DNA of 63,773 bases, filler included, from Dimorphilus gyrociliatus (lineage: Eukaryota > Animalia > Annelida): NCBI GenBank assembly GCA_904063045.1. It is 5 parts of 5 records of this genome, joined end to end, with 100 filler letters (N's around TTAATTAATTAA, not from the genome) between each part and the next. Parts side by side here need not be neighbours in the genome. Positions count along the whole stretch, not along the records: positions 1 to 28,227 come from CAJFCJ010000145.1; 4 more parts are not named here. One strand, written 5' to 3'. The position numbers were made by a program, and so were the translations under genes. This document shows, piece by piece, positions 1,663 through 25,682 of this stretch. The notes under the pieces were generated by a model, which did not search any database, was not told where the DNA came from, and saw only the letters and a program-made list of their open reading frames with translations. Numbering within the stretch: the stretch's first letter is position 1; every line of letters starts with the position of its first letter.

Positions 1663-2554
1663 TATATTGCCTAGTGATTATATGACATTCTATTTTTAGA
1701 TTTTGGAGACTGAAAAGTATAAATATTACTTATCAACAAGTAATAGTATTGTTAAAACATTATCCCAACAAAACCATGACATTTTGTCTCTTGGAAATTT
1801 TTTTAGAAAGATATTAATACAATTTCATTTGATAAGAAAATAAAATTCAAAACTCTTTTTGTTTCCTGTTTTTATTGTAATAAAACACTAAAGTACTTCA
1901 AAATCTCCCATATACTGGGCTTGCTACATTTAAAAACCCCTTTTTCACTGATGCTTTCAGGGTAGATGGTACTAAACCACCAAAAATGACCCCCTTTATA
2001 GGCAAAATATAGCATGTTACATATCCCAACAACATCAAGTGTGGTTTAGTCTACTGCCCTTGCTGTACAAATACAAATTTAGAGTGTAAAAGAAGGGTGA
2101 TTTATAGACTTTTGTAAGATGGTAAAAAATTTTGCAACAATGAAGTGATTATAAATTAACCAAGCAAGATGATGAGTATATTACCTTGAAAAACACCTAT
2201 CAATAAATATTCTTTAGACTAAATAGTTTTATTCTGTCAATAGATTTTTTGATAAAATCTTTGTGAAACATCCTTGAAAAAGACCTTACAAATTCAGGTC
2301 ATACCTTTACAGTTAGTCTTTCAATTGCTAATAAATTTACGTAAGCCAATTATGGAGTGTTTATACAGTTGAAGGTTTTACTGCATTTTTGTTGTTAGAC
2401 TATCAGTAGGCAAAATATTCTAGATTTTGATCTAAGGAAAAAATGGCCTACCAAAAAGGCCTATTATACTAGAAAATTGGCGAAGCGTATAATATATATT
2501 TAAAAGGGTAGAAAAGACCTTAAAGTAGCTCTAGTATGGAATATCAATAATAAA

Positions 2555-4222
2555 ATGGCTTCCAATACTTACTTGATTAGTGAAGATAGTCTAACTTGCG
2601 CTATTTGTTTAGATTCTTGGCTAGAAAGAGAGCCGAGAATGCTACAATGCCAACATACGTTTTGCCTGGATTGTCTACAAAAGTTAACAGTTACGAATGG
2701 GGCAATTGTCTGTTGCCTTTGTAAGGAAAAATGTAAATTGCCTGGCGGCCGAGTTGGCAACCTTCGAAAAAATATTATTGAGAGTTCGCTAAAGAGAGTG
2801 CCAATAGAAGAGAAATTGTGCTGTAAACATCAAAAAGAGTCGTCTCTCTTTTGTAAAACTCACAATACCGATAATCTGTGTAGTCTATGCTTCGAAGAGG
2901 ATCATCTACAATGCAATATTACAACAATGAAGAAGCAGAGGGAAAGGATCAACTTTATCAAGAATAATTACATAGGAAAAGAATTGAAAAAGAATGCGGA
3001 TATCCTCCGCAAAATTGACGTCATTAAAAGAACATGGCTGGAAACTATTGACAAACAATTTGCGGAAATGAAATATAAAATAAATAACATAAATCAAAAA
3101 AGAATTCAATTATTAAATGAGATTTTAATGCAAAATCCGGATGACGTTTATTTGAATGATTTCTTGGAGAAATTCTCCAAACAACAAACTCAATTTGAAA
3201 TATTAAATGACGCAAAAGTTGGCTATAGGATCAATAATCCAGGAGTAAGGAGTAATAGTTCAAATGAAGAGCCAAACGTTTTAATTGACTTTGAAAGAAG
3301 TTGCAGTACAGAGAAAGAAATTCATAGAGTTGTTGAAATTTTAAACAAAAGCCACAAAGTTCAAGATGTGAACTTTTCTCATAATTTACATTTGAACAAT
3401 GGAATTTCAAGAATTTGTAAACAATTAGAGAAATCTTGTGATTATTTAAAAAAGATTTATTTACAAAATTGTAATTTAAACGAAAACAGTTGCATTCTTA
3501 TTGGAAATTTATTAATGAACTGCTCGCAAATTCAACTGATAGGATTGGAAGAGAATACAAATATGGGTAGTGGATTGATGAAAATATGCCAAGGACTCGA
3601 AACGTCTTCGGCAACGTTGAACGCTTTAGGCTTTACGAATTGTAATCTAGATGAAGATATGAGCATTTATCTTGGTGAGTTGTTGGAGAATTGTAGTCAA
3701 ATTGAAAATATTTACTTGGGAGGGAATAGAAATATGAAGAATGGATTAATGAAGATATGCAAAGGTCTAGAAAGATCTTCAGCCAATTTGAAGATAATAT
3801 CTTTCAACAGTTGTAATCTGGACGTAACGATGTGCAAATATATTGGAAATTTATTAGTAAATTGTTGTCAATTTCAACAAATCTATCTTGGAGAAAACGT
3901 TAATATGAAACAGGGATTGTTAAAGATTTGCGAAGGTCTTGAAAAATCCTTTAATACCTTAAAGATTATAGCATTGGACTATTGCAATTTAGATGAATAT
4001 ATGTGCGGCTATATTGAAAGAGTTTTGGTGAATTGTACTCAAATCGAAAAGCTATATTTAGGTGGCAATACCCGTATAAGAAATAGGATAATGACCATTT
4101 GTGAAGCTCTACAAAAGTCTACTTCTCCTCTAATTGAGATTATTTTAACTGATTGTAAATTGGATGAGAATCATTGTAAAAGTATTAAGAGCCATTTTAG
4201 AAATATCTCTTTTACGATATAA
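2555..4222 (+). CDS. TRIM-like RING/B-box/short coiled-coil protein with C-terminal RI/NLR-type LRR array (555 aa, intronless)
   Basis: C3HC4 RING (CAIC...CQHTFCLDC...CCLC), B-box2-like CCKH-x7-CKTH...CSLC...HLQC, helical segment, then about 10 alternating 29/28-aa LRRs (IENIYLGGN... / LKIISFNSCNL...). ATG in AAAATGG context. Confidence 0.93.
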   Translation: MASNTYLISEDSLTCAICLDSWLEREPRMLQCQHTFCLDCLQKLTVTNGAIVCCLCKEKCKLPGGRVGNLRKNIIESSLKRVPIEEKLCCKHQKESSLFCKTHNTDNLCSLCFEEDHLQCNITTMKKQRERINFIKNNYIGKELKKNADILRKIDVIKRTWLETIDKQFAEMKYKINNINQKRIQLLNEILMQNPDDVYLNDFLEKFSKQQTQFEILNDAKVGYRINNPGVRSNSSNEEPNVLIDFERSCSTEKEIHRVVEILNKSHKVQDVNFSHNLHLNNGISRICKQLEKSCDYLKKIYLQNCNLNENSCILIGNLLMNCSQIQLIGLEENTNMGSGLMKICQGLETSSATLNALGFTNCNLDEDMSIYLGELLENCSQIENIYLGGNRNMKNGLMKICKGLERSSANLKIISFNSCNLDVTMCKYIGNLLVNCCQFQQIYLGENVNMKQGLLKICEGLEKSFNTLKIIALDYCNLDEYMCGYIERVLVNCTQIEKLYLGGNTRIRNRIMTICEALQKSTSPLIEIILTDCKLDENHCKSIKSHFRNISFTI

Positions 4223-4424
4223 AATACTTTTTAAAGTCATGTTTTAATGACTAGATTGTAAAAGAAGAAGAAGAAGAATATTTCTATTCATTAATTATCG
4301 CTCTTTTTTTATGTAGTTTTGTTTTTTTTTTAAAAAAAAAGGTTTTCTTCATAAATCATCACAAATTATCAAGCGTTAAAGTCCCTTATCAACGTCTACA
4401 TTCATTCGTTCATTCTTTACCAGT

Positions 4425-7007
4425 TTATTCTATTATCGTTTCGTATATATGCTCGGGGACAAGATGTAATATACAATGTTTAAATCGAGTTTTAAGAAGA
4501 TCACAATAGCAATCTTCCAATTTGCAATTGAGAAAATTAATTTCCTTTAAAGTATTTAATGACGTTAGAAGTGCGTTGTAAATAGCTACAAATCCGTAGC
4601 TCATATTCTCATTTTCTCCTAGGTATATATTCGTAATTTGAGAGCATTTCTCTAAAAGACTCTTAATAGATTCGCACATATCTTCCTTAAGATCGCAAGC
4701 TGTAAAATTAATGATTTTTAAATTATTCAACGAGTTTTCAAGTCCTTTACAAATTTCCTCTATTCCATTTCTTATATAGACATTTCCTTCAAAGTTTACT
4801 TGTTCTATTTGGGAACATTTGATAAAGAGATTTCCAATATCTTTGGATAGATGTTCGTCTAAGCTATTGTTTGCAAAATTGATACGTTTCAGCGTTGTAG
4901 AAGATCTCTCGAGTCCTTTACAAATGTTGAAAAATCCGTTTTGAATTTCGCTATTATTGCTAATGTCTATATCCTCAATACGACAGCATTTCAATAAAAG
5001 ATTACCAATAGATTGCGCAATATTCTCGTCAACTCCACAATTCCGAAATGAAATAGTTGTTAGGGAAGCCGAAGAATTTTGCAATTCATTACAAATATCA
5101 ATTAGACGTCCTCCTATTTTTCTATTTCCGGTTAGGTTTATATTCTCAATTGTAGAACAATTTTGCAACATTTGACTAATATTGGTGCACATTTGCTCAT
5201 TTAAATTACAATATTGAAAGTGGAGACACCGTATATAATTGGAATTTATTTCGAGTCTTTTCGAATATTCCAAGAATGAATTATCCATCTTGTCATTTCT
5301 GGATAGATTTATTTCTCTAATTTGAATGCAATTTATCAGCAGATTTTCAACGGCTCCGCACAAAATTTCATTTATGTTACAATTGCAAAGACGAAGAATC
5401 TTTAGCGTTTTTGAAGAGCTTTGTAATCCTTCTAAAATATTCAATAATCCTTCTTCTAACTTTTGATTGTTACTCAAATCTATACTTTCAATTCGACAAC
5501 AAATTGATAATAGATTTCCAATAGAAACGGCCTGATTCCTATTTAGATTACAATTTTCAAAGGAAATAACTTTGAGAAAAATTGAAGAGGCTGCCAGTCG
5601 TTGGCAAATTCCATTCAATTCACTTTCAATCATTCCATATCCTCCCAGACTGATTGTTTCAATTTTATGACAAACTGAAAGTAATTCTCCAATAGACGTA
5701 AACATGTTTTTAGACAAAGTCTTGTCCGATTTACAGCCAATAAGATTGATAAACTTTAAAGAATCGCATGACTCTTTTAACGCTATACAAATGTCTTTAA
5801 TTTCATCGCCAATTTCTTGATTGTTTGCCAAGTTTACGTGTTCGAGAATTGAGCATTTTTTCAATAGATTTACAACGGTTTTACCTTGATAACTACTCAA
5901 TTGAAAATTTTCAAAATCTAGATATTTCAATAGCGTTGATGAATTTCCAAGCGCTTGACAAACAATTAAAAAACCATTATCATTACTAATCCTACTTCCG
6001 GATAGACTAAAGCGTTTAATTTCAGTACAATTCGTTAATAGCTTTCCGAGATGTTCGCACATATTTACATCTAAACGACAATCAATAAATTCAATAACAT
6101 TTAAATGAGCGGCAGATGTTTGAAGATGGCGGAAAATTCTTTCCAATCCATCATTAACCAATGGTAAATTGAATGAAAAATTGATTTCTTCAATGTTTGT
6201 TGTTGTTTTTAACCGATTAATAATCTTTTTAATATCCATTTCCGTATTGAGATTCGGTGTAAAGCGAACATTTTGGCAAGTTTGCCTTTCAACCGCCATT
6301 TCCTCTCCATCTATTCTGAATTGCAATAGAGAATCGTCGAGTATTTCAATACTGGTGTTGTATTGAGAGAATTTTTCCAAGTAATCTTTCAAGCGAATTT
6401 CATTGGCGTTGTTGTAAAAGTATTGATTTAAAATATGAAATCTTTGCTCCTTTCTCTTATCGACAATATTTTGAATTTGTTGAAATTGTTCATTAACGTT
6501 TTGTATACATTTTGCTTTCAATTGGCGAATTCTATTAGAAATATTTGTATTCTTTTCCAACTCTTTTTTTACATAGATTTTCTTTAGTAAAGCGAAATTG
6601 TGTTCAGTTATAACCATATCGCATTTATGATGTCTTTCGTTGCAACATTCGGTGCATATATCTTCCCTATGAGTTTTACAATATATATACAATTCTTTTT
6701 GGTCATGTTTCTTACATAATTCATACGACGCCTTCTTCTTAACGCATCCATTGTCGGTTGTTGACTTTTGAAGTGACGTCAATAAAGGATTCCTTTTTAG
6801 ATTATCAACAACACCACCAGGAACAATTGACACTTGGCGACATCTAGAACAAGAAATACGTTCGTTTACAATTGACGATGATAGTAAACAATTTCGGCAG
6901 AAAGTATGTTGACAATCCAATGTTAGTGGATCATTTTCAAACCAGGAACGCTGGCAAATCGTACAAATTAAATCGTTTTTGTTTATTATAACTTCTATAG
7001 AGGCCAT
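4425..7007 (-). CDS. TRIM-like RING/B-box/short coiled-coil protein with long RI/NLR-type LRR array (860 aa, intronless)
   Basis: RING CTIC...CQHTFCRNC...CSRC, B-box CKKH...CKTH...CTEC...HHKC, then about 21 alternating 29/28-aa LRRs. Paralog of 2555-4222 in convergent orientation. Confidence 0.93.
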   Translation of the reverse strand: MASIEVIINKNDLICTICQRSWFENDPLTLDCQHTFCRNCLLSSSIVNERISCSRCRQVSIVPGGVVDNLKRNPLLTSLQKSTTDNGCVKKKASYELCKKHDQKELYIYCKTHREDICTECCNERHHKCDMVITEHNFALLKKIYVKKELEKNTNISNRIRQLKAKCIQNVNEQFQQIQNIVDKRKEQRFHILNQYFYNNANEIRLKDYLEKFSQYNTSIEILDDSLLQFRIDGEEMAVERQTCQNVRFTPNLNTEMDIKKIINRLKTTTNIEEINFSFNLPLVNDGLERIFRHLQTSAAHLNVIEFIDCRLDVNMCEHLGKLLTNCTEIKRFSLSGSRISNDNGFLIVCQALGNSSTLLKYLDFENFQLSSYQGKTVVNLLKKCSILEHVNLANNQEIGDEIKDICIALKESCDSLKFINLIGCKSDKTLSKNMFTSIGELLSVCHKIETISLGGYGMIESELNGICQRLAASSIFLKVISFENCNLNRNQAVSIGNLLSICCRIESIDLSNNQKLEEGLLNILEGLQSSSKTLKILRLCNCNINEILCGAVENLLINCIQIREINLSRNDKMDNSFLEYSKRLEINSNYIRCLHFQYCNLNEQMCTNISQMLQNCSTIENINLTGNRKIGGRLIDICNELQNSSASLTTISFRNCGVDENIAQSIGNLLLKCCRIEDIDISNNSEIQNGFFNICKGLERSSTTLKRINFANNSLDEHLSKDIGNLFIKCSQIEQVNFEGNVYIRNGIEEICKGLENSLNNLKIINFTACDLKEDMCESIKSLLEKCSQITNIYLGENENMSYGFVAIYNALLTSLNTLKEINFLNCKLEDCYCDLLKTRFKHCILHLVPEHIYETIIE

Positions 7008-7093
7008 TTTGTTATTGATCTCTGACGAATATCGAATAGAATCATTTATTAAAAGTACAATCCGCGTATTAGCTTAGAGATCGATATAATATC

Positions 7094-7224
7094 GAGGGAG
7101 GAGGAAAAGGAGGGGGAGAAGGGTGGGGAGATGAATGAAGAGTAGATGGAGGAGAAACAAGTGAAGGAGAAGGAGGGGAGGAGCAGGAGGAGCAGGAGGA
7201 GGAGAAAGGAGAAAAAGAAAAAGA
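7094..7224 (+). repeat. Polypurine (GA-rich) low-complexity tract
   Basis: About 130 nt of almost only G/A (gaggaggaaaaggagggggag...), just upstream of the minus-strand TRIM-LRR start. Confidence 0.8.
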
Positions 7225-7626
7225 ATATTCGTATTCTATTCTCTTCTCTAGATTCCATTAAAATCACCTTTTCATTTTAAATGTAATAAATAGGCTTTTA
7301 CTATTCAATAATCATTTTCGTAGACCAATCTATACTAAGCTTATTCCCCTTATCTAATACCAATTGTGTAAAGAGAGATAACAGAGAGAGAATAGCTAGT
7401 GCTTATCTCTTACGAAACTCCGGCAAAGAGATAAAATATAAAGATTTGTGTGCGAACCATAGTAACGAGGCCAAGAAACTAGATTTTCTTTAATCTCTGG
7501 AGAAGTAATCAGCATAGCAGCGGATAATAAATGCAGATAATAATACAATTAAAACTTGTCACGTGACTCTTATTCATAAATGAGAAATTCTCACATAGGT
7601 CAAAAAATTAAATAGAATTACTACTA

Positions 7627-9708
7627 TTAGTTCTTTAAGCAGACAATGAATAGAATGAATGATAGAATGTAAGAAAATAGTCCTATATTCTTCTTAACCG
7701 CCGTTGATCCACTACTATTTCCCTCTGAAACGATTGAAATAAAAGTTGAAAATCTGGAAAAATAAAACATTTGCACTGTTGAAACGCTTACTTTGAACTA
7801 AGATTTGTCTGCTATTGCTAGTCAGAGTAACGTAGTTATCAGAGTTTTTGTATAGTTTAACAACACAAGAAAAACTGGAATTATTAATAGAATATTGAGC
7901 AATGTCCGTAACTTGAAGTGTTATCCAATAGGGATTTGTCAACAACGTTTCATTCGCTTTGAAAACATTACCATTTCTATAGAGTTTGATATCAAACTTT
8001 CCACTACCCCAAAGATCCAGTTTACAAGCAAAATGAAAGCGTTCACCTTCTCTAAGAACCCTTGACGGACTTAAAGTCAGCTGTGGATCGGAATCTATAA
8101 TTTAAAAACAAATAAAATAAACAAGCGTTTGTTTGTCAAGTTTTGCTCAATCTTACTATAAACATAGATATGATCTGTATACGTATTCAAATTTCTTGAA
8201 CAGATAAAACTAGAGGCAAGAATTCCGCCGTTAGTCTGAAAGAGAGAGAGAGTAAAAAATATGTAAATGTTGAATGTTGATTTTTTCTTGTTTTTTATGC
8301 AAATTTTTTCATTACAGTCTCTAAACTTTTTATAGTAAAGTTGTAAAACGTTAGATTTGAATTCGTTGAAACTGTCCATTTATCTTTGAAATAATTGGAG
8401 AGGTAAGGTGTTTGGTATACGTTTAAAGAGTTAGCAGTGTTATTCAATTTCAGTTTTAGGTCTTTCTTCGCTGGAAAGGAGAAAATTTTGAATTTGAAAT
8501 GGAAAAACAATAGATAATAAGTTTTTACCTGAAAGAGAATAGGTAAATGATACAGTTTCTCCAACTTTACCAACTACGTATCCAGGTGTTGTGTGGAATT
8601 TAACTGAAAAAATCGCAGATGTTTAGTATTTTACAAGTCGATTGAATAATAGGGTTTAATAGGGTTTCTTACCTACATCTCCTATTACGTTATTATCTGG
8701 AAAAAGTAGATAGCGTCAGGCCTATTGTTGTTATTAAATAGAAATAGTAGTATTTACCTTTAACCTGAATGTTTATGGTATTACTGGAAAAAACTACAAA
8801 TTGCGTAGAATTCCTATTCAACTTGACATGACAAGTGAAATTATCGCCATTCATATCTTTGTTTGCGTGAAGGGAGATCCGTTGCGATATTTTTCCAAGA
8901 GATATTGTCGTTTCTGACGAGTTGATATTTTTAATTTTGTCTCCATTTTGAAGTATGTCAATGACAAAGCCGCCACTTCCCCATAATTCGAATTGGCAGT
9001 AAAAGTTGAAAAATTCATTAGTTTCAAGAATTTCACCTGGGCAGCTGGACAATGTTGGATCTGAATCTGTTACGGTAGTCAAACAAAACCACATTCGATT
9101 AACCCTTTTTGTACATTACGTCATAGAAAACAGTATAGAATATCTACCATAAACGTAAATAGTATCGTGTATATCGTCGTAATCAATGGTTCCAGTGTTT
9201 ACAATGATAGAAGATTTGAGAACGCAGCCGTCGCTCTAAGCGTAGGCAAAATGTTTCGTATATATGTTATATTAAAATAATTAAAGCGGACAGTGTTTAA
9301 TCACCTTTTGTAAGTTTCTAACAGTAAAATTATAAGTTGAACTGCGTCGAGAAGGTGTAACTGCCCACCTATCTCGAAAATTATTCATGATAAATGGAGT
9401 TCGGTAGATAACCTCTTCCCTATTTTTCATGACTTTCATTAAGCTTCTTTCTAATTAGCAATTGTATAGAATTGATTATTCAATATTTTTCCTACTGTTT
9501 CTACCGCTGATTGAATAGGTCCACGTTAAATCCTGTCCAATTTTGGCAAACATTCTACCCGGACGTTCAGTAAAATAGACTGAAATTCAAGTAGTATTGA
9601 TATATTAACAAGACGCTTTTTTGTCATCTTACCGCCGTAACAAACGGAAAAGCCAATTAGAGGTAGAAGAAGAAGAGGAGAACAGGAGGAGAGTAATGAA
9701 TTACGCAT
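7627..9708 (-). CDS. Secreted, probably GPI-anchored Ig-like protein; 11 exons, 475 aa; two tandem V-like + C-like units
   Basis: Hand-built GT-AG model keeps frame: 9708-9633, 9579-9505, 9450-9305, 9235-9148, 9066-8758, 8696-8673, 8603-8529, 8470-8316, 8235-8157, 8094-7792, 7724-7627. N-terminal signal peptide, paired Cys in the C-like domains, C-terminal GNSSGS followed by a hydrophobic tail. Confidence 0.85.
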
Positions 9709-10755: not shown

Positions 10756-12015
10756 ATGGCGAATCTTTCAATATCTTTTCAACGGCAGACTGTATTTTCA
10801 AAGATCTGCAATCAATTGTTAAAATCATCTAATACTCTGAAGAGTGTTACTTTCAATAAGTGTAATATTAATGATAAAGAGGTTCGAGTTATTGCGGAAT
10901 TATTGAACAAATGTTCAAAAATTGAAACCATTAATCTCGGTTATAACGACAATTTAGGAAATGGATTTTCATATATTTGTTTAGAACTTGAAAGATCATG
11001 GAAAACGTTAAAAGAAATTAATTTTTCAGTATGCGATTTGGTCGATTATCAGTGTAGAAGCCTTTGTAGATTAATGGCTAATTGTTGTCATCTCGAAGCA
11101 ATCAGGCTAGAATGGAATAGAAAAATGATGATAAACAATATAGAAAGATTCTGTTTAAATGTTGAAAAATCAGCAAATACTCTAAAGGTAATGGATTTTG
11201 GTTATTGTAATCTAAACGAATTCCACTGCAATTATATTGGTGATTTATTATCTAGTTGCTCAAAAGTTGAAACATTCATTTTAGGCGGAAATACCAAGAT
11301 GAACACTGGCTTTTTGAGTATTTGTCAAGGACTTTGCAATTCATTCAATTGTTTAAAAGAGATTAATTTTGAACATTGTTCTTTAAGTGAAAAGCAATTG
11401 GTGTTTTTTTGTGATCTATTAGAAGGTTGTTGTCGAATTGAAAGAATCAATTTGATGGGAAATGTAAATGTAGGAAAGAATTTAAAGAGAATTTGTGACG
11501 AACTTGAAAAATCTTCAAATGTTTTGAAGGAAATCAATCTTTCATGGTGTAAATTGGAAAATCAACATGCCAGTTACATAGGAGATTTAATAATGAAGTG
11601 TTCAAATATTGAAAGTATCAACTTGGAAAGGAATGAAGATCTTGGAACAGGACCAATGAATATATTCACAAGCTTTGAAAAGTCTGTAGATACTTTGAAG
11701 GAAATCAATTTGTCAAAATGCAATTTATTAATTGATCAAAGTCTATATATTGGAAATTTATTGATGAAATGCTCTAGAATTGAATATATAAATCTATCTT
11801 ATAACAGAAATTTACGGCACGGATGGCTACATATTTTTAAAGGATTTGAACAGTCGGTAAATTCTCTCAAGTACATCAATTTGTCGTATTGTGGAATCGG
11901 CAACAAATATCATAAACGTTTCGGCGATTTCTTATTGGCAAGCCGCCAATTAAAAACTGTATCACTGGAAGGTAATTACGGTATGGATATGATGTGTTCA
12001 TTGATAAGACAGTGA
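10756..12015 (+). CDS. LRR-only paralog of the TRIM-LRR family (419 aa, intronless)
   Basis: About 14 alternating 29/28-aa LRRs with the same consensus (IExINLxxN...ICxxLEKSxNTLKEINLSxCNL...IGxLLxKCS). No RING or B-box. ATG in AAAATGG context. Confidence 0.88.
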   Translation: MANLSISFQRQTVFSKICNQLLKSSNTLKSVTFNKCNINDKEVRVIAELLNKCSKIETINLGYNDNLGNGFSYICLELERSWKTLKEINFSVCDLVDYQCRSLCRLMANCCHLEAIRLEWNRKMMINNIERFCLNVEKSANTLKVMDFGYCNLNEFHCNYIGDLLSSCSKVETFILGGNTKMNTGFLSICQGLCNSFNCLKEINFEHCSLSEKQLVFFCDLLEGCCRIERINLMGNVNVGKNLKRICDELEKSSNVLKEINLSWCKLENQHASYIGDLIMKCSNIESINLERNEDLGTGPMNIFTSFEKSVDTLKEINLSKCNLLIDQSLYIGNLLMKCSRIEYINLSYNRNLRHGWLHIFKGFEQSVNSLKYINLSYCGIGNKYHKRFGDFLLASRQLKTVSLEGNYGMDMMCSLIRQ

Positions 12016-13383: not shown

Positions 13384-13676
13384 AATATTCAAGATAGGAG
13401 ATGATGACGATGATGATGATGAATTTTTGTTGTTGTTGTTGTTACTATAGCAATAAATCCCCCTATGAATTATCTATCTGAAATATTCCATCATAAGAGA
13501 AGGTTGTACCACATAATTAATATCTGTCTAACGGTCTATAGACAGTAAATATTTATTTTGGGTAATGAACTATTAATTTCTGTTTGGTGAAGCTTTTTCT
13601 TCATTTACGTCAAGTGAATATACCGCATAGAGGTATTGTCTATTGGCAAGTCTCTCTCTCTCTCTCTGTGTCAGAA

Positions 13677-14594
13677 ATGAATAATTCTACTGTAGATTTC
13701 ACTACTGCAAATGTAAAAACCTCCGAGATAGTAATCGTTAATACGTTTTACTTTCTATTCTTTATTCTGGGTGTTACGTTCAATGGTATCGTTTTAATTG
13801 TTATTGTTTATAATTACAAACAACTGAAAGATACTATTGTTATATTTATACCTGCAATTACAATTTGCGATCTATTGACATGCGTTTGGAGTTTGGCAAG
13901 AATGTTTGTAGGATCATTGTATAGATACGAGAGTTTATCACCTCTCTTATGCGTATTTATGAATCTATTTCAATCGATAATCTATGTAGAATCTCAATAT
14001 TTTCTATTGTTTATCTTTATATATAAATATATTATGATTAAATATCCATTTCATTTTGAAAATTATCTCAATTTAAAGAGATCCTTTATCGTTGTTCTAT
14101 CTATTGTATTATTCTCATTTAGCGTATGTCTATTTCCGTCTTATGTAGCGTTTCTTGGTGTTGGAAAGAGCAACATTTGCCAAGGACACATGGCTTATGA
14201 ATACGAATATTATTTAATCTATTTTACATTTTTTCTACCAGTTATTATTGGAAGTTTAATATTTCATATTAAAATATTAAAGATTGCTAAACACCATGCG
14301 CTGGATATTGAAAGGCAGACTAGAAGAATGAAAAACGTTTCTAAATCCTCCAAAGCCACACTTTTCCAATTGTGCTTAATACTTTTTCTATGGTTGGCCT
14401 ATTCAACATGTACAGTTCACTTAATCTATAATTATAATGTTGGCCTAGTTAAATTATTAGCGTGCGTAGATTTTCTCATATTGCTGCAAGCAGTTGTCAA
14501 TCCAGTAATAACAACATTCGGTAATACACCAATAAAAGTAGCAATTATACAATTTTTTAAATTAGAACAAAGTGCCGTGGCTGCCGTTGAATAG
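13677..14594 (+). CDS. Class A (rhodopsin-like) 7TM GPCR, orphan, atypical motifs (305 aa)
   Basis: Seven hydrophobic segments, N-terminal NNS sequon, TM2 DLL, KYxxIxYPFH after TM3, TM7 NPVI. True ATG is probably 13677. Confidence 0.85.
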   Translation: MNNSTVDFTTANVKTSEIVIVNTFYFLFFILGVTFNGIVLIVIVYNYKQLKDTIVIFIPAITICDLLTCVWSLARMFVGSLYRYESLSPLLCVFMNLFQSIIYVESQYFLLFIFIYKYIMIKYPFHFENYLNLKRSFIVVLSIVLFSFSVCLFPSYVAFLGVGKSNICQGHMAYEYEYYLIYFTFFLPVIIGSLIFHIKILKIAKHHALDIERQTRRMKNVSKSSKATLFQLCLILFLWLAYSTCTVHLIYNYNVGLVKLLACVDFLILLQAVVNPVITTFGNTPIKVAIIQFFKLEQSAVAAVE

Positions 14595-16241: not shown

Positions 16242-17141
16242 TTAACATTTAGGTGAAAAAAATTTGATTAAATTCTTTCTAAATGATACTTGGAATAAAA
16301 TGTAGATAAAGAAATTTGAAGAATTATTAATAAGATATAAATGATGTAGAATTAAATTTGTTGGTAATATTGAAGTAATTTCAAAGGCAACTGGAAACCA
16401 ACTGAGTAGATATACTGTTGTAACGCCAAACAGCATTATTGCAGTTTTAATACTTTTAGTAAAACGTTGAAAATCTGTTTTCATGTTATCTTGAATATTA
16501 ATTTGATTTTTCTTCAATTTTATACTCCTTAGGAAGACTACTTTAAAAATTAAGCCATAAATTGAATACAAGATAATCAGAGCCGATATAAAAACGAAAA
16601 AGATAAGGTGTCTATGAACTTTAAAAACTAATCCAGGTACTGGAAAACAATTCTTCAATGTGCAACCATCGTATCTTTTACCATTTCTGACTTTGTATAA
16701 TAAAGCGTTAAATGCCCCAGCAACCAATCCTGATAATCCAATTGATATAAACATGTTCTTGATATGCTTTTCATAAAGTCTTGTAAATGGTCTACAAATA
16801 CAAAACCACCTTTCAATAGCAACAAATACAAAGGTAAATGATGAGCTAACCAACAGAAAATGATAGAGAAACATAGTAATTTTGCAAATGATGGTATTTT
16901 TAATAAAACCAAATTCCAGAATTATAATATAAGGACCACAAGATCCACATATGACTATATCAATAATTGCTATACCTTTTATAAATAGATCATTAGGATT
17001 AAAGGTTTTTTTGAAATCATAAAAAAATAATATTAGAAAATTTGAAATTATTCCAGTGATTATTGTTATTAAAACATAAATTAAAAATGGAATAAATTGC
17101 ATTAAATCTATTCCAGTTTTGCAGAATGTTCCATTTTTCAT
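16242..17141 (-). CDS. Class A (rhodopsin-like) GPCR, peptide-receptor-like, intronless
   Basis: TM3 AIERWFCICRPF, TM2 DIVIC, TM6 SWFP, TM7 NFFIY. Likely start MKNGT at 17141. Confidence 0.88.
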   Translation of the reverse strand: MKNGTFCKTGIDLMQFIPFLIYVLITIITGIISNFLILFFYDFKKTFNPNDLFIKGIAIIDIVICGSCGPYIIILEFGFIKNTIICKITMFLYHFLLVSSSFTFVFVAIERWFCICRPFTRLYEKHIKNMFISIGLSGLVAGAFNALLYKVRNGKRYDGCTLKNCFPVPGLVFKVHRHLIFFVFISALIILYSIYGLIFKVVFLRSIKLKKNQINIQDNMKTDFQRFTKSIKTAIMLFGVTTVYLLSWFPVAFEITSILPTNLILHHLYLINNSSNFFIYILFQVSFRKNLIKFFSPKC

Positions 17142-18262
17142 CACAACCAACTGCAAATTCAAAAAGAAAATCGAAAATATATACTGTATAAAATTGGTTT
17201 TATACTGCAAAAGTAAGTAAACAATCTGTGACGTAACGGAAAGTTTTCTAATGTTTTTTTTAATGTATAGATTAAAGTGGGAAGAAGCTATTGTATTCTT
17301 ACTTTGATGTAGTATCTAATAAAATTACTCTTAATTAGACACAATTAGGCAAGATAGCAGACACTGTACAAAGTTGTTTTTAAAGTTACTATAAGCTCTT
17401 TACACACCTTGGCAGGTAGATAGAACACTTGTAACACTTGCGTTTTTTCCTAAATATAGCTTTGTAAGTCAGATTGTTATCAGTTGTGATAAGAACTTCC
17501 GGCTATGGCCATTGAAGGTAAAGCTCTCTCCTTCTCTCTCTCTCTCTCTCTCTCTCTCATTCAATAAGCGATAATTGACAAAAATATGCATTCTGTTTTT
17601 AGAACACATTTGGATGTAGGATTCAGAGTTTCACCTCAAGACTATAAAAAAATGAATGGTCTTATTGATAACATTGCCAAAAAAAGAATACATAAGATTA
17701 CCAGAAAAGTAGCAGAAAAGCTTCAACTGGCATTAATGGATACATTTTCAAGGCATCTATAAAGAACAGAGTTGGAGACCAATGTTGATTGATAGATGTC
17801 AATGATGTATTGAAATCTGAAATACCTACTTGACCAAATTAATCAATATTAAGATGGAGTTATAACCCTATTTACTATCATCCTGGCCACATATCCCAGA
17901 TATTCAATGTAGATATAAAAATGTAAAATTGTTTTTTAGCTAAGCCTAACAGACAAGCAAACCATTAAAATATGATATAGTTGGCACAAGTCCAAAACTT
18001 TAAAAAGTTAAGGTTGTTCACCTCTTATTATTTTGGCTGGTATCTCTAACAGGGGACCGAGAAAATAATATCCTAAAGGGTAGACTTTTTAGAGTTAGAT
18101 TAGGGACAATTTTAGGGTTAAAATATTGAAATTACTTTTCTTTAGCCTAAAATTAAACTGAGAATTAGGAAGAACAAAAGGAAGGTAAATTTGTTTATTG
18201 GTAGGGTTAGGATGAAAATCCAACAACTAGGGCATTTTTCTTTTCACACCAGCAATAATATA

Positions 18263-19910
18263 CAGTACGGGTAACCTATTTTTGAACGCCCAGCTATTTT
18301 CTATAATAGTTAAAATATTTTTTCTATAACATTAATTTTACAATCGAATAATTAGATATGTCAATTATCTCTTTGCACACAACAGATTCAACTAGTTAAA
18401 TTTTTAAATTTCACTGTTTAAATAACAAAAAAAATTTTATTCTGAAAATGTCACAAAAAGTGCCCGATATCCTATTTTTGAACTTTATGAATTCTGATAA
18501 AAATGTTGTTAGAAAAGGTAAGAAATATGTTTATTTTTACATTTTATTAACGTATAGATTATATTACTTCAAATAATCACTTTTTCTTTTTCTTTAATAT
18601 CTTATATTATATCCTTTATTTTTCCAACATAATCTGGCTCTTTTATGGAAGCTTTTGTATAAATTTGCAATATACCAATTTGGTATGTTATTAAATTCCT
18701 CTTCTACTGCCCTCCACAAATCATCTTTTGTCTGCAAAACATGGGTTTGCAACCTATTTTTTAAGTAAGCCCACAAATTTTCAATAATGTTCAATTCTGG
18801 GCTTCTGGATGGCCAGTCTTGTAAAACTGTTATATTGTTTCTCTCAAGAAATGTCCTTGTAGATGCCGATGTATGACATTTGGCACCATCCTGCATAAGC
18901 AGGTTGTCTGGCTCAAACATTGGAAATAGCTTCTCCTCAAGTATTTCTTGGTATAAATTGCTGTCCATATACCCATTATATAACTTTATAGCTCTTGTCC
19001 CATCAGCTTTTATACACCCCCATATTGATATTGATGAATTTGCTGTTCGAACAGCTTTTTTGGTGTATTTTGGATCATACCGTTTATGACTCCCCCTATG
19101 GACCCAAATTCTTCTTTTTGGATACAATTCAATCCGACTTTCATCGGAAAATATAATTTTGTTTACATCTTCTTGACTCTTATTTAACATAGACAAACAA
19201 AAAGATTTTCTATTTCTTGCATGGCAAGGTTTTAGCGCTGGCTTACTTGTTGCAACATAGCTTTTAAGGTCGTTTTTTTGCAAAATCTTTTTGCATGTCG
19301 ATAGAGAAATTTTGGAACCTAATCCTGAATGTTCAAGCACATTCCTTGCCGTTAGAAATGGATTTCTCTTTGAAATTTGGCAAATTTTTCTCTCTTCCCT
19401 TTCTGTTAAAATCTTTGGGGTACATAGTTTCGATAGATTGTTAATAGTTCCATGTTTCTCAAATTTTTTTGTTATGTAGTGGACAGATCCCTTTGAAATT
19501 TTTAATTGTTTTGCAATTTCGTTCATTGACATCTTCTCCTTCCTCTTTTCCAACACTAATTTTCTCATGTCCAAGCTTATTTTTGGCATTTTTAACTTTT
19601 TTAAAATTGTTATCCTACTTTGATTCTTGACATAAATTGTCATGTGGGAAAGCAAAAAAATTTGGTCATTTTCGTAAATTTTTAATTATTGTTCAAAAAT
19701 AGGATATCGGGTACTTTTCACGATTTTTTCATAATAAAAATTTTTTGTTATTTAAACAGTAAAATACAAAGATTTAATTAATTGAATATGTTGATTACAA
19801 AGTCACAATTGCCATGTCTAATTGTTGGATTGTAAAATTAATGTTAAAGAAAAAATATTTTAACTAATATAGAAAAAAGCTGGGCGTTCAAAAATAGGTT
19901 ACCCGTACTG
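18263..19910 (-). mobile_element. Tc1 family 1 copy B (1648 bp, complete, inverted relative to copy A)
   Basis: Same termini and IR/DR structure as 15-1662, TA on both sides, only a handful of differences from copy A. Confidence 0.97.
18594..19589 (-). CDS. Intact Tc1 transposase, DD35E (331 aa)
   Basis: Open from MPKISLD to GYNIRY-stop. FSDES, QDGA and NIIENLW present, with 35 residues between the second D and the E. Confidence 0.95.
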   Translation of the reverse strand: MPKISLDMRKLVLEKRKEKMSMNEIAKQLKISKGSVHYITKKFEKHGTINNLSKLCTPKILTEREERKICQISKRNPFLTARNVLEHSGLGSKISLSTCKKILQKNDLKSYVATSKPALKPCHARNRKSFCLSMLNKSQEDVNKIIFSDESRIELYPKRRIWVHRGSHKRYDPKYTKKAVRTANSSISIWGCIKADGTRAIKLYNGYMDSNLYQEILEEKLFPMFEPDNLLMQDGAKCHTSASTRTFLERNNITVLQDWPSRSPELNIIENLWAYLKNRLQTHVLQTKDDLWRAVEEEFNNIPNWYIANLYKSFHKRARLCWKNKGYNIRY

Positions 19911-20770
19911 TATTATCCTACTGTGTAACACAAACATCTTTTATATGAAAAGTTTAACAATTATACAGAAAATTAGCAGAAAACAAAGAAAAGTATATTA
20001 GAATATTGGAAGCAAAATATTCAGGTTATGGTAACAATTTGAAATGCTTCAATGACATCATTGGATTTACTTGATAGGGCTTCTGACATTTATACCCTAA
20101 TCTATAATATCTTTGTTCTTCAATATAATTATAATGTTGTCAATTATTATTGTTCTGCTCTTTGCTTGGTCAACTTTATGAGTTTGCAGGTCACAACAGG
20201 CTGCTTCTACTCCATATTTATTTTTAGTACAAGGTGAAACATTTAGGTAGGCTTATTGAATTTACGGTTAGCCACATCTTAAAAGGGCTAATTGAATTAT
20301 GTCTTGGCCACACACAATAAAAGATGGGCCTCTGGGATGACTAATTGGAACACAATTTGAATAAATCCGCTTGTTAGTTGGATTGTGTATAGTAATATAA
20401 TTTAAGCATAAATGATAAGAAAAGTTGTAAATTACTGTTATTACTCTTTTTTTAGAAAGAAAGCTTTTGATATGAGCCCAAGAACACCTGGCCTGTCAGT
20501 TAGTATAAAACTACCGCACCTTAAACCATTCGCCATTCTGTTCATCAAATTTTAGACTACACGCCATCTGTGAACACTTTTTACCTGAGAGAGTTCAATG
20601 GCTAAAGCAAGAGAAAGCTGTCAATGCTAACATTTTTTTTGCTTGGCAAGTTGTAACCTAACATCTTAACTTGTTAGGCCTTTTTGTTTTATTTGAAAAC
20701 TGAAATTATTATAGGCCTTGTGTTATTATTTTGTTTAGGAGAGAAGTCATTGTTGTAATTCTGAAAAAGT

Positions 20771-21893
20771 ATGTCAATAATAAGACAATGGTGCACTATT
20801 TCTTTTTGTATAATAATAAGTGTATTTGGAATATACATGAGTCTGCAGATCTGTTCAGAGGAGGAGGATTACGATGATACAGATAATGAAGGAATATTAC
20901 AAACTGATAAGGTATTTTAAAAATAAATTTCGGAAAATAATCAGAATTTATTGGGAATAATTTTACATGCAGAATATATTAACTAAATTGGATAAAACGC
21001 AATTATACGTCTTGTGTCTACCAGAAAAAGGATTTGCTAATACCATAAGGTCTTTGATTGCTTGTAAAATTCTATCTGAAGTCTTAAATAGAACTACACT
21101 AATTTATCCAAATATTCCAAAACGAGAATGCTCCCTTGAAACTTTTTTTTATCTCAACTCTATTCGAGTTATTGATAGTGAAAAATTGACTCTTCCTAAA
21201 TTTCCTACTTATAGAATTCTTTATTCTAATGTAACCTATATTGAAGAGCTAATGGGTAATAAAGAAAAAATTTTTGCTGTAAGCAGCTTTAATTACTTTT
21301 TAAAGATAGAAACATTGTCTAGACTGAAACTTTCAAAAAAGAAATTCAAGAAATCAAGACTCGATATTAACGTGTTTTTAGAATATTTTGAGAGACTTTT
21401 TAAACCGAAGGAATTACTCTTAAATGAGCTTTCGATGCATTTAAACACTTTTAGGAAATACAAAACGATCAATTGTATTCAATTTAGAACTGGCTGGACT
21501 GAACATGATCACCCCAGGAAATGGACAGAGAAATGCATTAGGGACGCCTTAAATCTTAAACGAATTGCATCCACCGAAAAAGATTCATCACTCCTTTTCG
21601 TTACGGTGGATAGTTTTATTTTGAAGCATTTTATCAAGAGCACTGCAAAATATCCCGTATATTTTGTCGAAGGCGTACCAAGTCACTACAGAGATATACA
21701 TTCATCTTGTCAATTAATTTTAAATATATATACGGAATTCTTCCTCTTACGACAGTGTGGCGAGGTGTTGGTAAGTGATAGTTCAACATATGGAATGTAT
21801 GGAGCTGCAAGAAGTTTTGCTAAGAACAGAGTGTCAATAATGAAATGCGTTAACAACACTTTATCACATAGAAGAAGCAGAATGTGGGTATAG
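20771..21893 (+). CDS. Type II membrane GT-B glycosyltransferase, fucosyltransferase-like (alpha-1,6/O-FucT/NodZ-type motifs); 2 exons, ~353 aa
   Basis: Exon 1 (20771-20911) encodes a short tail, TM helix and acidic stem. Exon 2 runs from 20973. Motif-like segments KGFANTIRSL, CIQFRTG, FVTVDS and EFFLLRQC...SSTYG. Confidence 0.7.
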
Positions 21894-22838: not shown

Positions 22839-24063
22839 CAGTACCGGCGGTAAGTCACTGTTACACCTCAAAAAAATAATATTTTCTTGATTTTTTCTCT
22901 TTCCATACTTAAAGAATGAAAATGAAGGATATTATTATATTTAGTAATATTCTTCTTATCATTATAGAGAGAAAATATATGTTTTTCATTTAAAATCTCA
23001 GAAATATGATTGTATGACAGCTAGCCCCATCCTGCTGGAAAATTTCCCCTCTCCTATAATTTGGGACAACATGACTGCTCAAAATTTTAACATAATCCAA
23101 AGCTGTCATGCAATTAGACACTAAAGCTAGGCCCCTATCTCCTGTATATTTGATATAGCCAAACACCATGATATTCCCTCCCCCAAATTTTACTGTTTTT
23201 GTGGTATATTTGGGGTCATTCCATTTACCCAGTGGCCTGCTAACAAACTCCCTTCTCCTAGGATGCAGCTCAACCTTTGATTCATCAGAAAAAATTACTT
23301 TTTTCCAATTTTCAATCCCCCAGTTTTCTCTTTCTCTACAGAACTCTTTCCTACTTATTATCTGCCTCTTAGATAAAGCAGGTTTTTTGGCTGCAATTCT
23401 CCCATTTAAATTATTTTTTCGTAGTACCTGCTTCACTGTTGTTAGAGAAAGAGATATAGGTATACCAGAATTATATAATACCTGATGGGCCATCCACTTT
23501 GGGTTTGACTTAGATGCCCTGGTAATTTGCCTTTCCATCTTTGGTGTCACTTTTTTGGTCTACCACTTCTTTGCTTATCTTTTATCGTTTTTAGCTCTTT
23601 AAATTTATTTTTTATATTTTGTACAGTAGTTGGACTACATTTAAAAAGCTTTGCCACTTTTCGAATGGACATTTCTGGTCTTTGAAGACAATTTAAGATA
23701 GAAATTCTTGTTGCTTCAGATAGCTTCACCATTTTTATTTTAAATTTGTCAACTGTTAGATTACACATGCACACACACATAAATGACCTTAAAATCTGGT
23801 TAAAAGTGACACTACTCAATGATCAGGGTAAATTTTTGGAACATAACTGATGCTTGTGCTTTTCCATAAATAGGTCTATCACATTAAAGTGATCATATTT
23901 CTGAGATTTTAAATGAAAAACATATATTTTCTTTCTATAATGATAAGAATATTATTATTAAATATAATAATATCCTTCATTTTCATTCTTTAGGCACGGA
24001 AAGAGAAAAAATCAAGAAAATATTATTTTTTTGAGGTGTAACAGTGACTTACCGCCGGTACTG
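22839..24063 (-). mobile_element. Tc1 family 2, internally deleted (1225 bp)
   Basis: 172-bp near-perfect IRs (22839-23010, 23892-24063) starting CAGTACCGGCGGTAAGTCACTG, with TA flanks. Confidence 0.95.
23011..23732 (-). pseudogene. Truncated, frameshifted Tc1 transposase (family 2)
   Basis: MVKLSEA...SGRPKK, frameshift in an A-run at ~23547-23552, FSDESK, then QQDGASCHT fused directly to IR sequence. The catalytic E region is deleted. Confidence 0.9.
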
Positions 24064-24575
24064 TATAAAAATTAATTGTCAGTCTTTAAATAGCTCTATT
24101 ATATTATAATGGGCAAAGATATTTTGTCCACTTTTGGCTGCTGCTCCATACTAAATATAGATAGTGTTGAACTGTATTGATAGAGATTGGTAGTGTTGAC
24201 CTACATTCACAAAAATTGGTGCACACACGAAATGCAGCAAAAGGTGCACCTAACCCTGAAATTAAGAAAAGATGGAACATTTTTATTTAATATGATTATT
24301 AAGCAGATTTAAAAATTGTCGCGTGACTAAAATAAGGAGTTAAAAACAAAGGATTAGCATCTATAATGTTAGAAAGGTCCAATAAATTAAGAGAGAAAAA
24401 GAAAATCATAGTGAACGCTTGCCACCCTATTATTACAAAGGTAATAAATCATATTCGTTCATGGGCAAAATCACATGTCCTTTAGAATGATCTGGGTAAC
24501 AGACCCATAAATTGATCCCAGCAAAGAATAGTACAATGGCATTACTTTTCTTTTTGAATATAAATTTTAAAAATA

Positions 24576-25682
24576 CAGTACAGGTAACCTATTTTTGAAC
24601 TCCCAGCTATTTTCTATATTAGTTAAAATATTTTTTGTATAACATTAATTTTACAATCCAATAGTCAGACATGGCAATTAGGACTTTGTACACAACATAT
24701 TCAACTAATTAAATTTTTAGATTTCACTGTTTAAATAACAAAAAAAACTTTATTCTGAAAAAATCACAAAAAGTGCCCGATATCCTATTTTTGAACTTTA
24801 TGAATTCTGATAAAAATGTTGTTAGAAAAGGTAAGAAATATGTTTATTTTTACATTTTATTAATGTATAGATTATATTACTTCAAATAATCACTTTTTCT
24901 TTTTCTTAATACCTTATATTATATCCTTTATTTTTCTGACATAATCTGGCTCTTTTATGAAAGCTTTTGTATAAATTTGTAATATACCAATTTGATATGT
25001 TATTAAATTCCTCTTCTACTCCCCTCTACAAATCATCTTTTGTCTGCAAAACATGGGTTTGCAACCTATTTTTTAAGTAAGCCCGCAAATTTTCAATAAT
25101 GTTCAATTCTGGGTTTCTGGATGGCCAGTCTTGTAAAACTGCTATATTGTTTCTCTCAAGAAATGTCCTTGTAGGTGCCGATGTATAACATTTGGCACCA
25201 TCCTGCAATTGTTAATAGTTCCATGTTTCTCAAACTTTTTAATTATGTAATGGACAGATCCCTTTGAAATTTTTAATTGTTTTGTGATTTCATTCATTGA
25301 CATCTTCTCCTTCCTCTTTTCCATCACTAATTTTCTCATATCCAAGCTTATTTTTGGCATTTTTAAATTTTTTAAAATTGTTATCCTACTTTGATTTTGG
25401 ACATAAATTTTTGTGTGGGAAAGCACAAAAATTTGGTCATTTTCATAAATTTTTAATTATTGTTCAAAAATAGGATATTGGGTACTTTTCACAATTTTTT
25501 CATAATAAAATTTTTTTTGTTATTTAAACAGTAAAATACAAAGATTTAATTAATTGAATATATTGATTACAAAGTCACAATTGCCATGTCTAATTGTTGG
25601 ATTGTAAAATTAATGTTAAAGAAAAAATATTTTAACTAATATAGAAAAAAGCTGGGTGTTCAAAAATAGGTTACCTGTACTG
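24576..25682 (-). mobile_element. Tc1 family 1 copy C, non-autonomous with a 541-bp internal deletion (1107 bp)
   Basis: Both ends and TA flanks present. The junction ctgca|attgtt at 25207/25208 removes the equivalent of 18896-19436 of copy B (1648-541=1107). Many CpG transitions. Confidence 0.95.

Follow-up and report, generated by a model that had tools for sequence, protein, structure and literature searches.

TRIM proteins and NLRs are two of the chief expandable families of innate-immune genes in animals, and in each of them the signaling module is joined to its sensor in a fixed pairing. The locus described here raises the question of what becomes of these pairings when the two families meet in a single polypeptide. 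Within a 63,773-nucleotide stretch of DNA from the annelid Dimorphilus gyrociliatus (assembly GCA_904063045.1; hereafter the window, whose coordinates are used throughout), we studied the piece from 2555 to 7007 (G+C content 30%), which carries two genes whose products begin with the RING finger, B-box and predicted coiled coil (RBCC) of a TRIM-type ligase and continue into an array of leucine-rich repeats (LRRs) of the ribonuclease inhibitor (RI) class that is typical of NLRs. An initial annotation had seen in them a candidate new class of immune receptor and E3 ubiquitin ligase. As far as our searches reach, genes 1 and 2 are on balance probably functional members of a lineage-restricted and fast-diversifying TRIM subfamily of dinophilid annelids, which we call TRIM-LRR. 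To speak of a new receptor or ligase class therefore overreaches, since the RBCC is nearest to that of TRIM2 and TRIM3 and the subfamily stands beside a sister group that carries an NHL-like propeller.

That the genes are intact and intronless, as first described, was borne out: each is an uninterrupted open reading frame (ORF) at exactly the place initially assigned to it (Table 1). The two are convergent and their products share 31% identity. Logan contigs from four sequencing runs were placed on the interval 2000–7600. The likely source run of the genomic sequence contributed a single 8.3-kb contig that spans both genes, and an independent 2017 run (X2), deposited under a different organism code, exactly two contigs, one of 1731 nucleotides on gene 1 (2573–4303) and one of 3042 nucleotides on gene 2 (4283–7324), both colinear with the window and with 0 mismatches. 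The species has two NCBI taxids, as Dinophilus and as Dimorphilus gyrociliatus, which would account for identical sequence under two organism codes. The 3' ends of these two contigs share ~20 nucleotides, and the upstream intergenic DNA (2000–2560) is not covered by any X2 contig. Such a pattern is that of a transcriptome assembly; because the X2 contigs are colinear with each gene and terminate at the gene ends, we infer that each gene yields one unspliced RNA spanning both the RBCC and the LRR parts. The possibility that these parts are a misjoin, which was raised at the outset, is ruled out by the colinear contigs of two runs together with the identical architecture at other loci: an RBCC-LRR protein encoded by a single ORF is also found at seven other loci in two organisms, and every relative whose DNA was fetched is a single ORF. 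A TATA-like AT-rich stretch lies at 2488–2506, ~35–55 nucleotides upstream of the first start of a transcript-like contig (2542), and fits a 5' untranslated region (UTR) of ~13 nucleotides for gene 1. Neither protein is present as an exact sequence in a collection of 15 billion proteins, nor is the product of a 308-codon ORF at 20967–21893. The two genes thus seem to be unannotated or to have been modeled differently, perhaps because multicopy, repeat-rich genes are masked in annotation.

The N-terminal part of both proteins has the features by which TRIM proteins are recognized, a C3HC4 RING with a B-box2 directly after it, in the usual domain order. Both proteins exceed the curated cutoff of the Pfam model zf-RING_UBOX. 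The eight zinc ligands of the RING do not vary in one alignment of the family (A1); in an alignment of 37 members, to which all conservation counts refer, they are kept in 36; the position that contacts the ubiquitin-conjugating enzyme (E2), which is I17 of gene 1 and lies between the first two cysteines, is isoleucine, leucine or valine in 32; and the linchpin position, the residue after the last RING cysteine, is lysine or arginine in 27. Conservation of the B-box2 ligands (C89, H92, C100, H103, C109, C112, H117 and C120) ranges from 32 to 35 of the 37. A profile built from the N-terminal 260 residues finds the solved TRIM3 structure with an E value of 2.4e-19, the alignment covering the RING, the B-box and the first part of the coiled coil as far as position 194; TRIM2 (8e-17), TRIM21, TRIM56 and TRIM72 follow, and the alignment runs through the RING-B-box constructs of both TRIM3 and TRIM21. 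An AlphaFold2 model of the 555-residue product of gene 1 has a mean predicted local distance difference test score (pLDDT) of 76.6 and shows one long helix and a shorter one, then some strands, and finally a confidently predicted LRR horseshoe. On this sequence evidence the proteins belong to the TRIM family, within which their RBCC comes nearest to TRIM2 and TRIM3, the type with an NHL domain.

The first repeat begins ~45 residues after the helix. The autocorrelation of residues along the proteins has a sharp peak at a lag of 57, at which gene 1 is 46% identical to itself, and the stacked units follow the alternating 28/29-residue pattern of the RI class, a double unit of 57 residues. In the consensus of 245 units the strands read LxxLxLxxN and LxxLxLxxCxL. 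Sequence searches matched RI and NLRP5 (E values in Table 1) as well as NLRP3 and NLRP14, the NLRPs within their LRR parts, and with Foldseek ~310 residues of the model superpose on NLRP3, NLRP5, NLRP14 and RI at 2.4–3.4 Å; for the RI chains the root-mean-square deviation from the model array is 2.4–3.1 Å and the template modeling score by target 0.58–0.62. A shape search of the ESM Atlas returned LRRC31, RI and NLRC3. The local Pfam LRR models, LRR_6 included, have no match to the repeats at E ≤ 0.1, which probably explains why the relatives bear the public name "RING-type domain-containing protein". No NACHT domain was found in either protein by Pfam (E ≤ 0.1) or PDB searches; the PDB matches to NLRPs are confined to their LRR parts, and the gap between helix and LRRs leaves no room for one. 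The order initially proposed (RING, B-box2, helix, RI-class LRRs, no NACHT) stands. The proposal that the repeats are of the NLR type is likewise supported, at the level of best matches and not of a tree: beyond the family itself, a full-length family profile finds its best matches in NACHT-LRR proteins, which are from metagenome assemblies, from a sponge (NLRC3-like) and from fish (NLRP3-like). No tandem repeats are detectable at the DNA level in the LRR arrays.

Table 1. Coordinates of the TRIM-LRR genes, their domains and the LRR-only paralogue (g3) in the window (aa, amino acids; nt, nucleotides; HMM, hidden Markov model).
Feature	Position	Strand	Description or evidence
Gene 1	2555–4222	+	Uninterrupted single-exon coding sequence, 555 aa: RING, B-box2, predicted coiled coil and 5 double LRR units (~10 LRRs)
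Gene 1 RING finger, C3HC4, aa 15–56	2597–2722	+	Pfam zf-RING_UBOX, 25.5 bits (cutoff 25.2)
Gene 1 B-box2, aa 89–120	2819–2914	+	Conserved zinc ligands; RBCC profile aligns to TRIM3 here; no Pfam match
Gene 1 predicted coiled-coil helices, aa 125–193 and 198–209	2927–3181	+	AlphaFold2 model m125aec96e045, pLDDT ~70–83
Gene 1 RI/NLR-class LRR horseshoe, aa 253–547	3311–4195	+	57-aa periodicity; pLDDT >90; Foldseek matches NLRP3, RI, NLRP14
Spacer	4223–4424	.	202 nt between the genes, containing the 3' UTRs of both; transcript contigs overlap at 4283–4303
Gene 2	4425–7007	-	Uninterrupted single-exon coding sequence, 860 aa: RING, B-box2, helix and 10 double LRR units (~20 LRRs)
Gene 2 LRR array, aa 270–841	4485–6200	-	The HMM of the 57-aa unit matches ten times; RI 2.9e-22, NLRP5 1.3e-12
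Gene 2 B-box2, aa 98–129	6621–6716	-	Weak Pfam zf-B_box match (E 7.9e-4, aa 97–138); ligands conserved
Gene 2 RING finger, aa 15–56	6840–6965	-	Pfam zf-RING_UBOX, 27.5 bits; TRIM2/TRIM3 RING match in PDB
LRR-only paralogue (g3)	10756–12015	+	419 aa, 7 double units; unit HMM E 1e-88

To place the two genes we searched 1.84 billion representative proteins exhaustively with the RBCC profile; a word-indexed search, for which the query was just the gene 2 RBCC, gave no matches. The exhaustive search returned 40 proteins at E ≤ 1e-30. When an HMM of the 57-residue unit was scanned over the best 150 RBCC matches, an LRR array of 2 to 19 double units was found directly after the RBCC in 35 of them. 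All the named LRR-bearing relatives are from D. gyrociliatus, where at least nine members are annotated proteins with no more specific label than "RING-type domain-containing protein" or "uncharacterized"; of the others, those whose source was checked trace to a single set of runs (SRR23372216/228/229/231). The family thus comprises dozens of divergent, often clustered and intronless copies. In the organism of the SRR23372216 set three genes of ~1166 codons stand in tandem at one locus (L003), with a mutual identity of 44–48%, and in the window the two RBCC-LRR genes and one LRR-only gene lie within 10 kb.

In a phylogenetic tree of the RBCC, the LRR family and a series of proteins of ~500 residues are united with 98% support in a clade that excludes the TRIM-NHL and TRIM-SPRY proteins of other animals. 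Within it, 34 of the 35 LRR-bearing proteins fall into one group (support 84) and 23 proteins that have no LRRs into a sister group (support 92); the proteins of the SRR23372216 set constitute a subclade of their own, and both window genes are placed with three D. gyrociliatus proteins in a clade with 96% support. The sister group (one protein, P0032, and ~23 relatives from D. gyrociliatus and the SRR23372216-set organism) combines an RBCC of this type with a C-terminal domain of ~250 residues that has no Pfam match; AlphaFold2 models this C-terminus as a beta-propeller, and Foldseek matches it to the NHL domains of TRIM71, TRIM2, TRIM3 and Brat. Because the LRR group adjoins this NHL-like-propeller group on the tree, the simplest history that it suggests is a single exchange, in a ligase of the TRIM-NHL type, of the propeller for an LRR array of the RI/NLR class, with separate radiations in each species thereafter. 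The propeller-bearing sister family is itself a sizeable expansion.

Some observations on the margins of the family can be added. The LRR-only ORF of the window has no hidden RBCC exon upstream of it in any frame, and the RBCC HMM matched no other ORF of the window. Proteins consisting of LRRs only are also present in D. gyrociliatus (P0004) and in the SRR23372216-set organism (P0007), and such paralogues could represent either the lineage that donated the array or products of truncation. Just downstream of two annotated D. gyrociliatus TRIM-LRR genes are short ORFs with LRR units (L006:12903-13242, minus strand; L007:12959-14011, plus strand), which are probably decayed copies. Farther afield, there are ESM Atlas clusters that combine zf-B_box with LRR_4 or LRR_8, and a cluster of RING and B-box proteins of ~743 residues, some of whose members are assigned to ciliates, Ciliophora accounting for 6 of the 54 members of the nearest cluster; an uncharacterized AlphaFold DB protein of 950 residues (A0A814JAE2) aligns to residues 11–554 of the model, RBCC and LRR included. 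These may be convergent architectures, outside the annelids, in which an RBCC or a B-box has been joined to LRRs.

How do these proteins compare with systems already described? Their closest solved relatives by RBCC, the class VII TRIM-NHL proteins (TRIM2, TRIM3, TRIM71/LIN-41 and Brat), have the same order of RING, B-box2 and coiled coil (the last predicted in the annelid proteins), but end in a propeller, with a filamin repeat in addition, where the annelid proteins have RI/NLR-class LRRs, and the annelid genes are intronless, multicopy and fast-diverging. NLRs (NLRP3, NLRP5, NLRP14, NLRC3) and RI share the alternating 28/29-residue repeat, placed C-terminally; however, the central NACHT/NB-ARC STAND NTPase that serves NLRs as a switch was not found, and in place of it and of a death-fold effector there is an E3 module. 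The likeness to the class IV (PRY-SPRY) proteins TRIM5alpha and TRIM21 is one of logic only: as is generally known of these, a single chain couples a variable C-terminal binder to ubiquitination by the RBCC, in multigene families expanded in particular lineages. Theirs is recognition by a B30.2 beta-sandwich, whereas here it would be by an LRR solenoid, for which there is no known ligand. LRRs also act as the target-binding module of other ubiquitin ligases, among them LRSAM1, the bacterial NEL ligases IpaH and SspH, and FBXL, PRAME and LRR-1. LRSAM1 has an N-terminal LRR, a SAM domain and a C-terminal RING, and lacks a B-box; the annelid order is instead RING, B-box, helix and LRR, and neither Pfam nor the model gave a SAM match. 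The NEL ligases employ a cysteine-dependent domain that is not a RING, and FBXL, PRAME and LRR-1 serve cullin ligases as adaptor subunits, so that none of them is an RBCC ligase in one chain. Fish NLR-C proteins reportedly bear a B30.2 domain like that of the finTRIMs, an exchange of TRIM and NLR modules within an expanded immune family. It would be the reciprocal of the present case, since there an NLR gained the sensor domain of a TRIM and here a TRIM gained that of an NLR.

The canonical TRIM C-termini, in classes C-I to C-XI, are COS, FN3 and SPRY, PHD-bromo, NHL and filamin, MATH, ARF or transmembrane domains, or none; the C-terminus found here is an RI-class LRR array, which lies outside these classes as initially proposed, and a published sequence-based TRIM classification makes no mention of LRRs (PMC3503706). 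A survey of domain architectures in invertebrate immunity does not contain such a fusion either (PMC8195603). The accompanying suggestion that the architecture is not that of a described family holds for the literature, as no paper with "TRIM-LRR" or a like term was found in what we searched; it does not hold for the databases, in which the D. gyrociliatus members mentioned above are already deposited.

What such proteins do can be approached from the conservation of their parts, and we think it somewhat probable that they are active E3 ligases in which the LRRs bind the target. Because the zinc ligands, the E2-contact isoleucine and the basic linchpin are conserved, the RING would be expected to recruit a ubiquitin-charged E2; the helix would form a dimer in the manner of TRIM proteins, the concave face of the LRRs would be the target-binding module in place of a propeller or SPRY domain, and whatever is bound there would be ubiquitinated. 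The targets could be non-self or danger-related molecules, so that the proteins would form a cytosolic set of sensor-effectors comparable to TRIM5 and TRIM21; this analogy we hold more tentatively, at something short of an even chance. It is prompted by the radiations within single species, by duplication in local clusters and by the resemblance of the LRRs to those of NLRs; the divergent copies, the variable repeat number, the LRR-only copies and the fragments fit recognition of non-self as well. A still more specific version is speculative and on the whole unlikely: a single-chain cytosolic pattern-recognition ligase, whose LRRs would bind a microbial or viral ligand and whose RING would be activated by coiled-coil and B-box avidity or lattice formation, with no nucleotide switch, perhaps compensating for a reduced NLR set in a miniaturized annelid lineage. 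The D. gyrociliatus genome paper mentions only nine expanded families, mostly of locally duplicated immune genes (PMC7854359).

Several results weigh against this interpretation. The expanded families are not named in the text of the genome paper, and the terms TRIM, NLR and LRR do not occur in its supplementary files. Expression of the genes rests on the assembled contigs of X2, for which no library type is recorded. The RING is poorly modeled in the 555-residue protein (pLDDT 31–56), and a minority of members have no E2-contact isoleucine or no linchpin. The paralogues, at 31–48% identity, are too diverged for an estimate of the ratio of nonsynonymous to synonymous substitution rates (dN/dS). 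Lastly, a hypervariable concave face is not evident, the per-position entropy of the 245 units placing variable positions on the concave strand and equally on the helices.

This even spread of variation would suit a ligase of another kind, in which an equally active RING serves LRRs that bind endogenous substrates, in a regulatory, germline or developmental role rather than in the detection of non-self. We regard it as rather unlikely, but it has some substance: among the best structural matches are, besides NLRP3, the oocyte-lattice proteins NLRP5 and NLRP14, the sister group is similar to the TRIM-NHL proteins, a set of regulators of development, and LRR substrate receptors, such as FBXL, PRAME and LRR-1, are frequent in ubiquitin ligases. 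Housekeeping receptors, however, are usually conserved one-to-one, whereas the TRIM-LRR paralogues have the low identities just given and have radiated separately in two organisms; nor would one expect of them arrays that vary from 2 to 19 double units and are accompanied by fragments and LRR-only copies. The loss of the E2 contact or the linchpin in some members, and the existence of the LRR-only paralogues (g3, P0004 and P0007), would rather suit proteins that are mostly non-catalytic, the LRRs acting as a stoichiometric binder or inhibitor in the way of RI itself, or as a scaffold, and the RBCC merely oligomerizing. Some TRIM RINGs are reported to be inactive as monomers (PMC6487577). But the retention of the zinc ligands, the E2 contact and the linchpin at the frequencies found here would be difficult to account for if E2 binding were not under selection, and we consider a mostly non-catalytic family quite improbable.

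It is scarcely credible that the genes are an artifact, be it a chimeric assembly, a contaminant (for example from a ciliate) or decaying retrocopies. The absence of the exact proteins from the public collection, the mostly small scaffolds on which the annotated relatives lie and the Ciliophora of the nearest ESM Atlas cluster might raise such a suspicion. Against it, the 8.3-kb genomic contig and the two transcript-like contigs of a different run agree base for base, the ORFs are intact across 555 and 860 codons with constrained zinc ligands, one relative is located on a 4.6-Mb D. gyrociliatus scaffold, and the neighbors are animal genes (two rhodopsin-type receptors, a short-chain dehydrogenase and Tc1/mariner).

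The two receptor genes, which adjoin the TRIM-LRR cluster, are single-ORF genes for G protein-coupled receptors of the rhodopsin family at 13584–14594 (plus strand) and 16242–17210 (minus strand), with Pfam 7tm_1 E values of 5e-16 and 6e-15. Between 7715 and 9439 on the minus strand there are paired similar short ORFs (7715–7945 resembling 8693–9094, and 8295–8573 resembling 9281–9439) that have the appearance of exons duplicated within a single gene on this strand, which may be immunoglobulin-like; one of them was checked and has no Pfam match. A Tc1/mariner element of ~1657 bp with terminal inverted repeats of ~225 bp occurs at 12–1668, 18257–19913 and 24570–25689. The two full copies are 99.6% identical and in opposite orientation, one of them with an intact transposase ORF of 353 codons, and the third is internally deleted and ~95% identical; the element looks to have been active recently. 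A second, different Tc1-like transposase (22990–23819, minus strand) is broken into two ORFs, a helix-turn-helix part and a truncated DDE part. No transposon copies are common to the window and the D. gyrociliatus loci that were fetched; one such locus is similar to the window in G+C content.

What the locus documents is the direct attachment of an NLR-type sensor to a TRIM-type ligase, a combination that has been multiplied into dozens of divergent copies. Domain shuffling is common in the immune repertoires of invertebrates, and here the hybrid logic of TRIM and NLR is clean and testable. These genes escape the Pfam LRR models, and the proteins encoded by those of the window are missing from the public collection that was searched. 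Even if their role is not an immune one, they add a C-terminal class to the TRIM classification and document the swap of a propeller for an LRR array. An immune role is plausible from the sequences, and if the proteins do bind non-self ligands, the family would couple an LRR sensor to ubiquitination without a NACHT switch, and would offer a compact, intronless and tractable system for its study in a laboratory annelid with a genome of 74 Mb.

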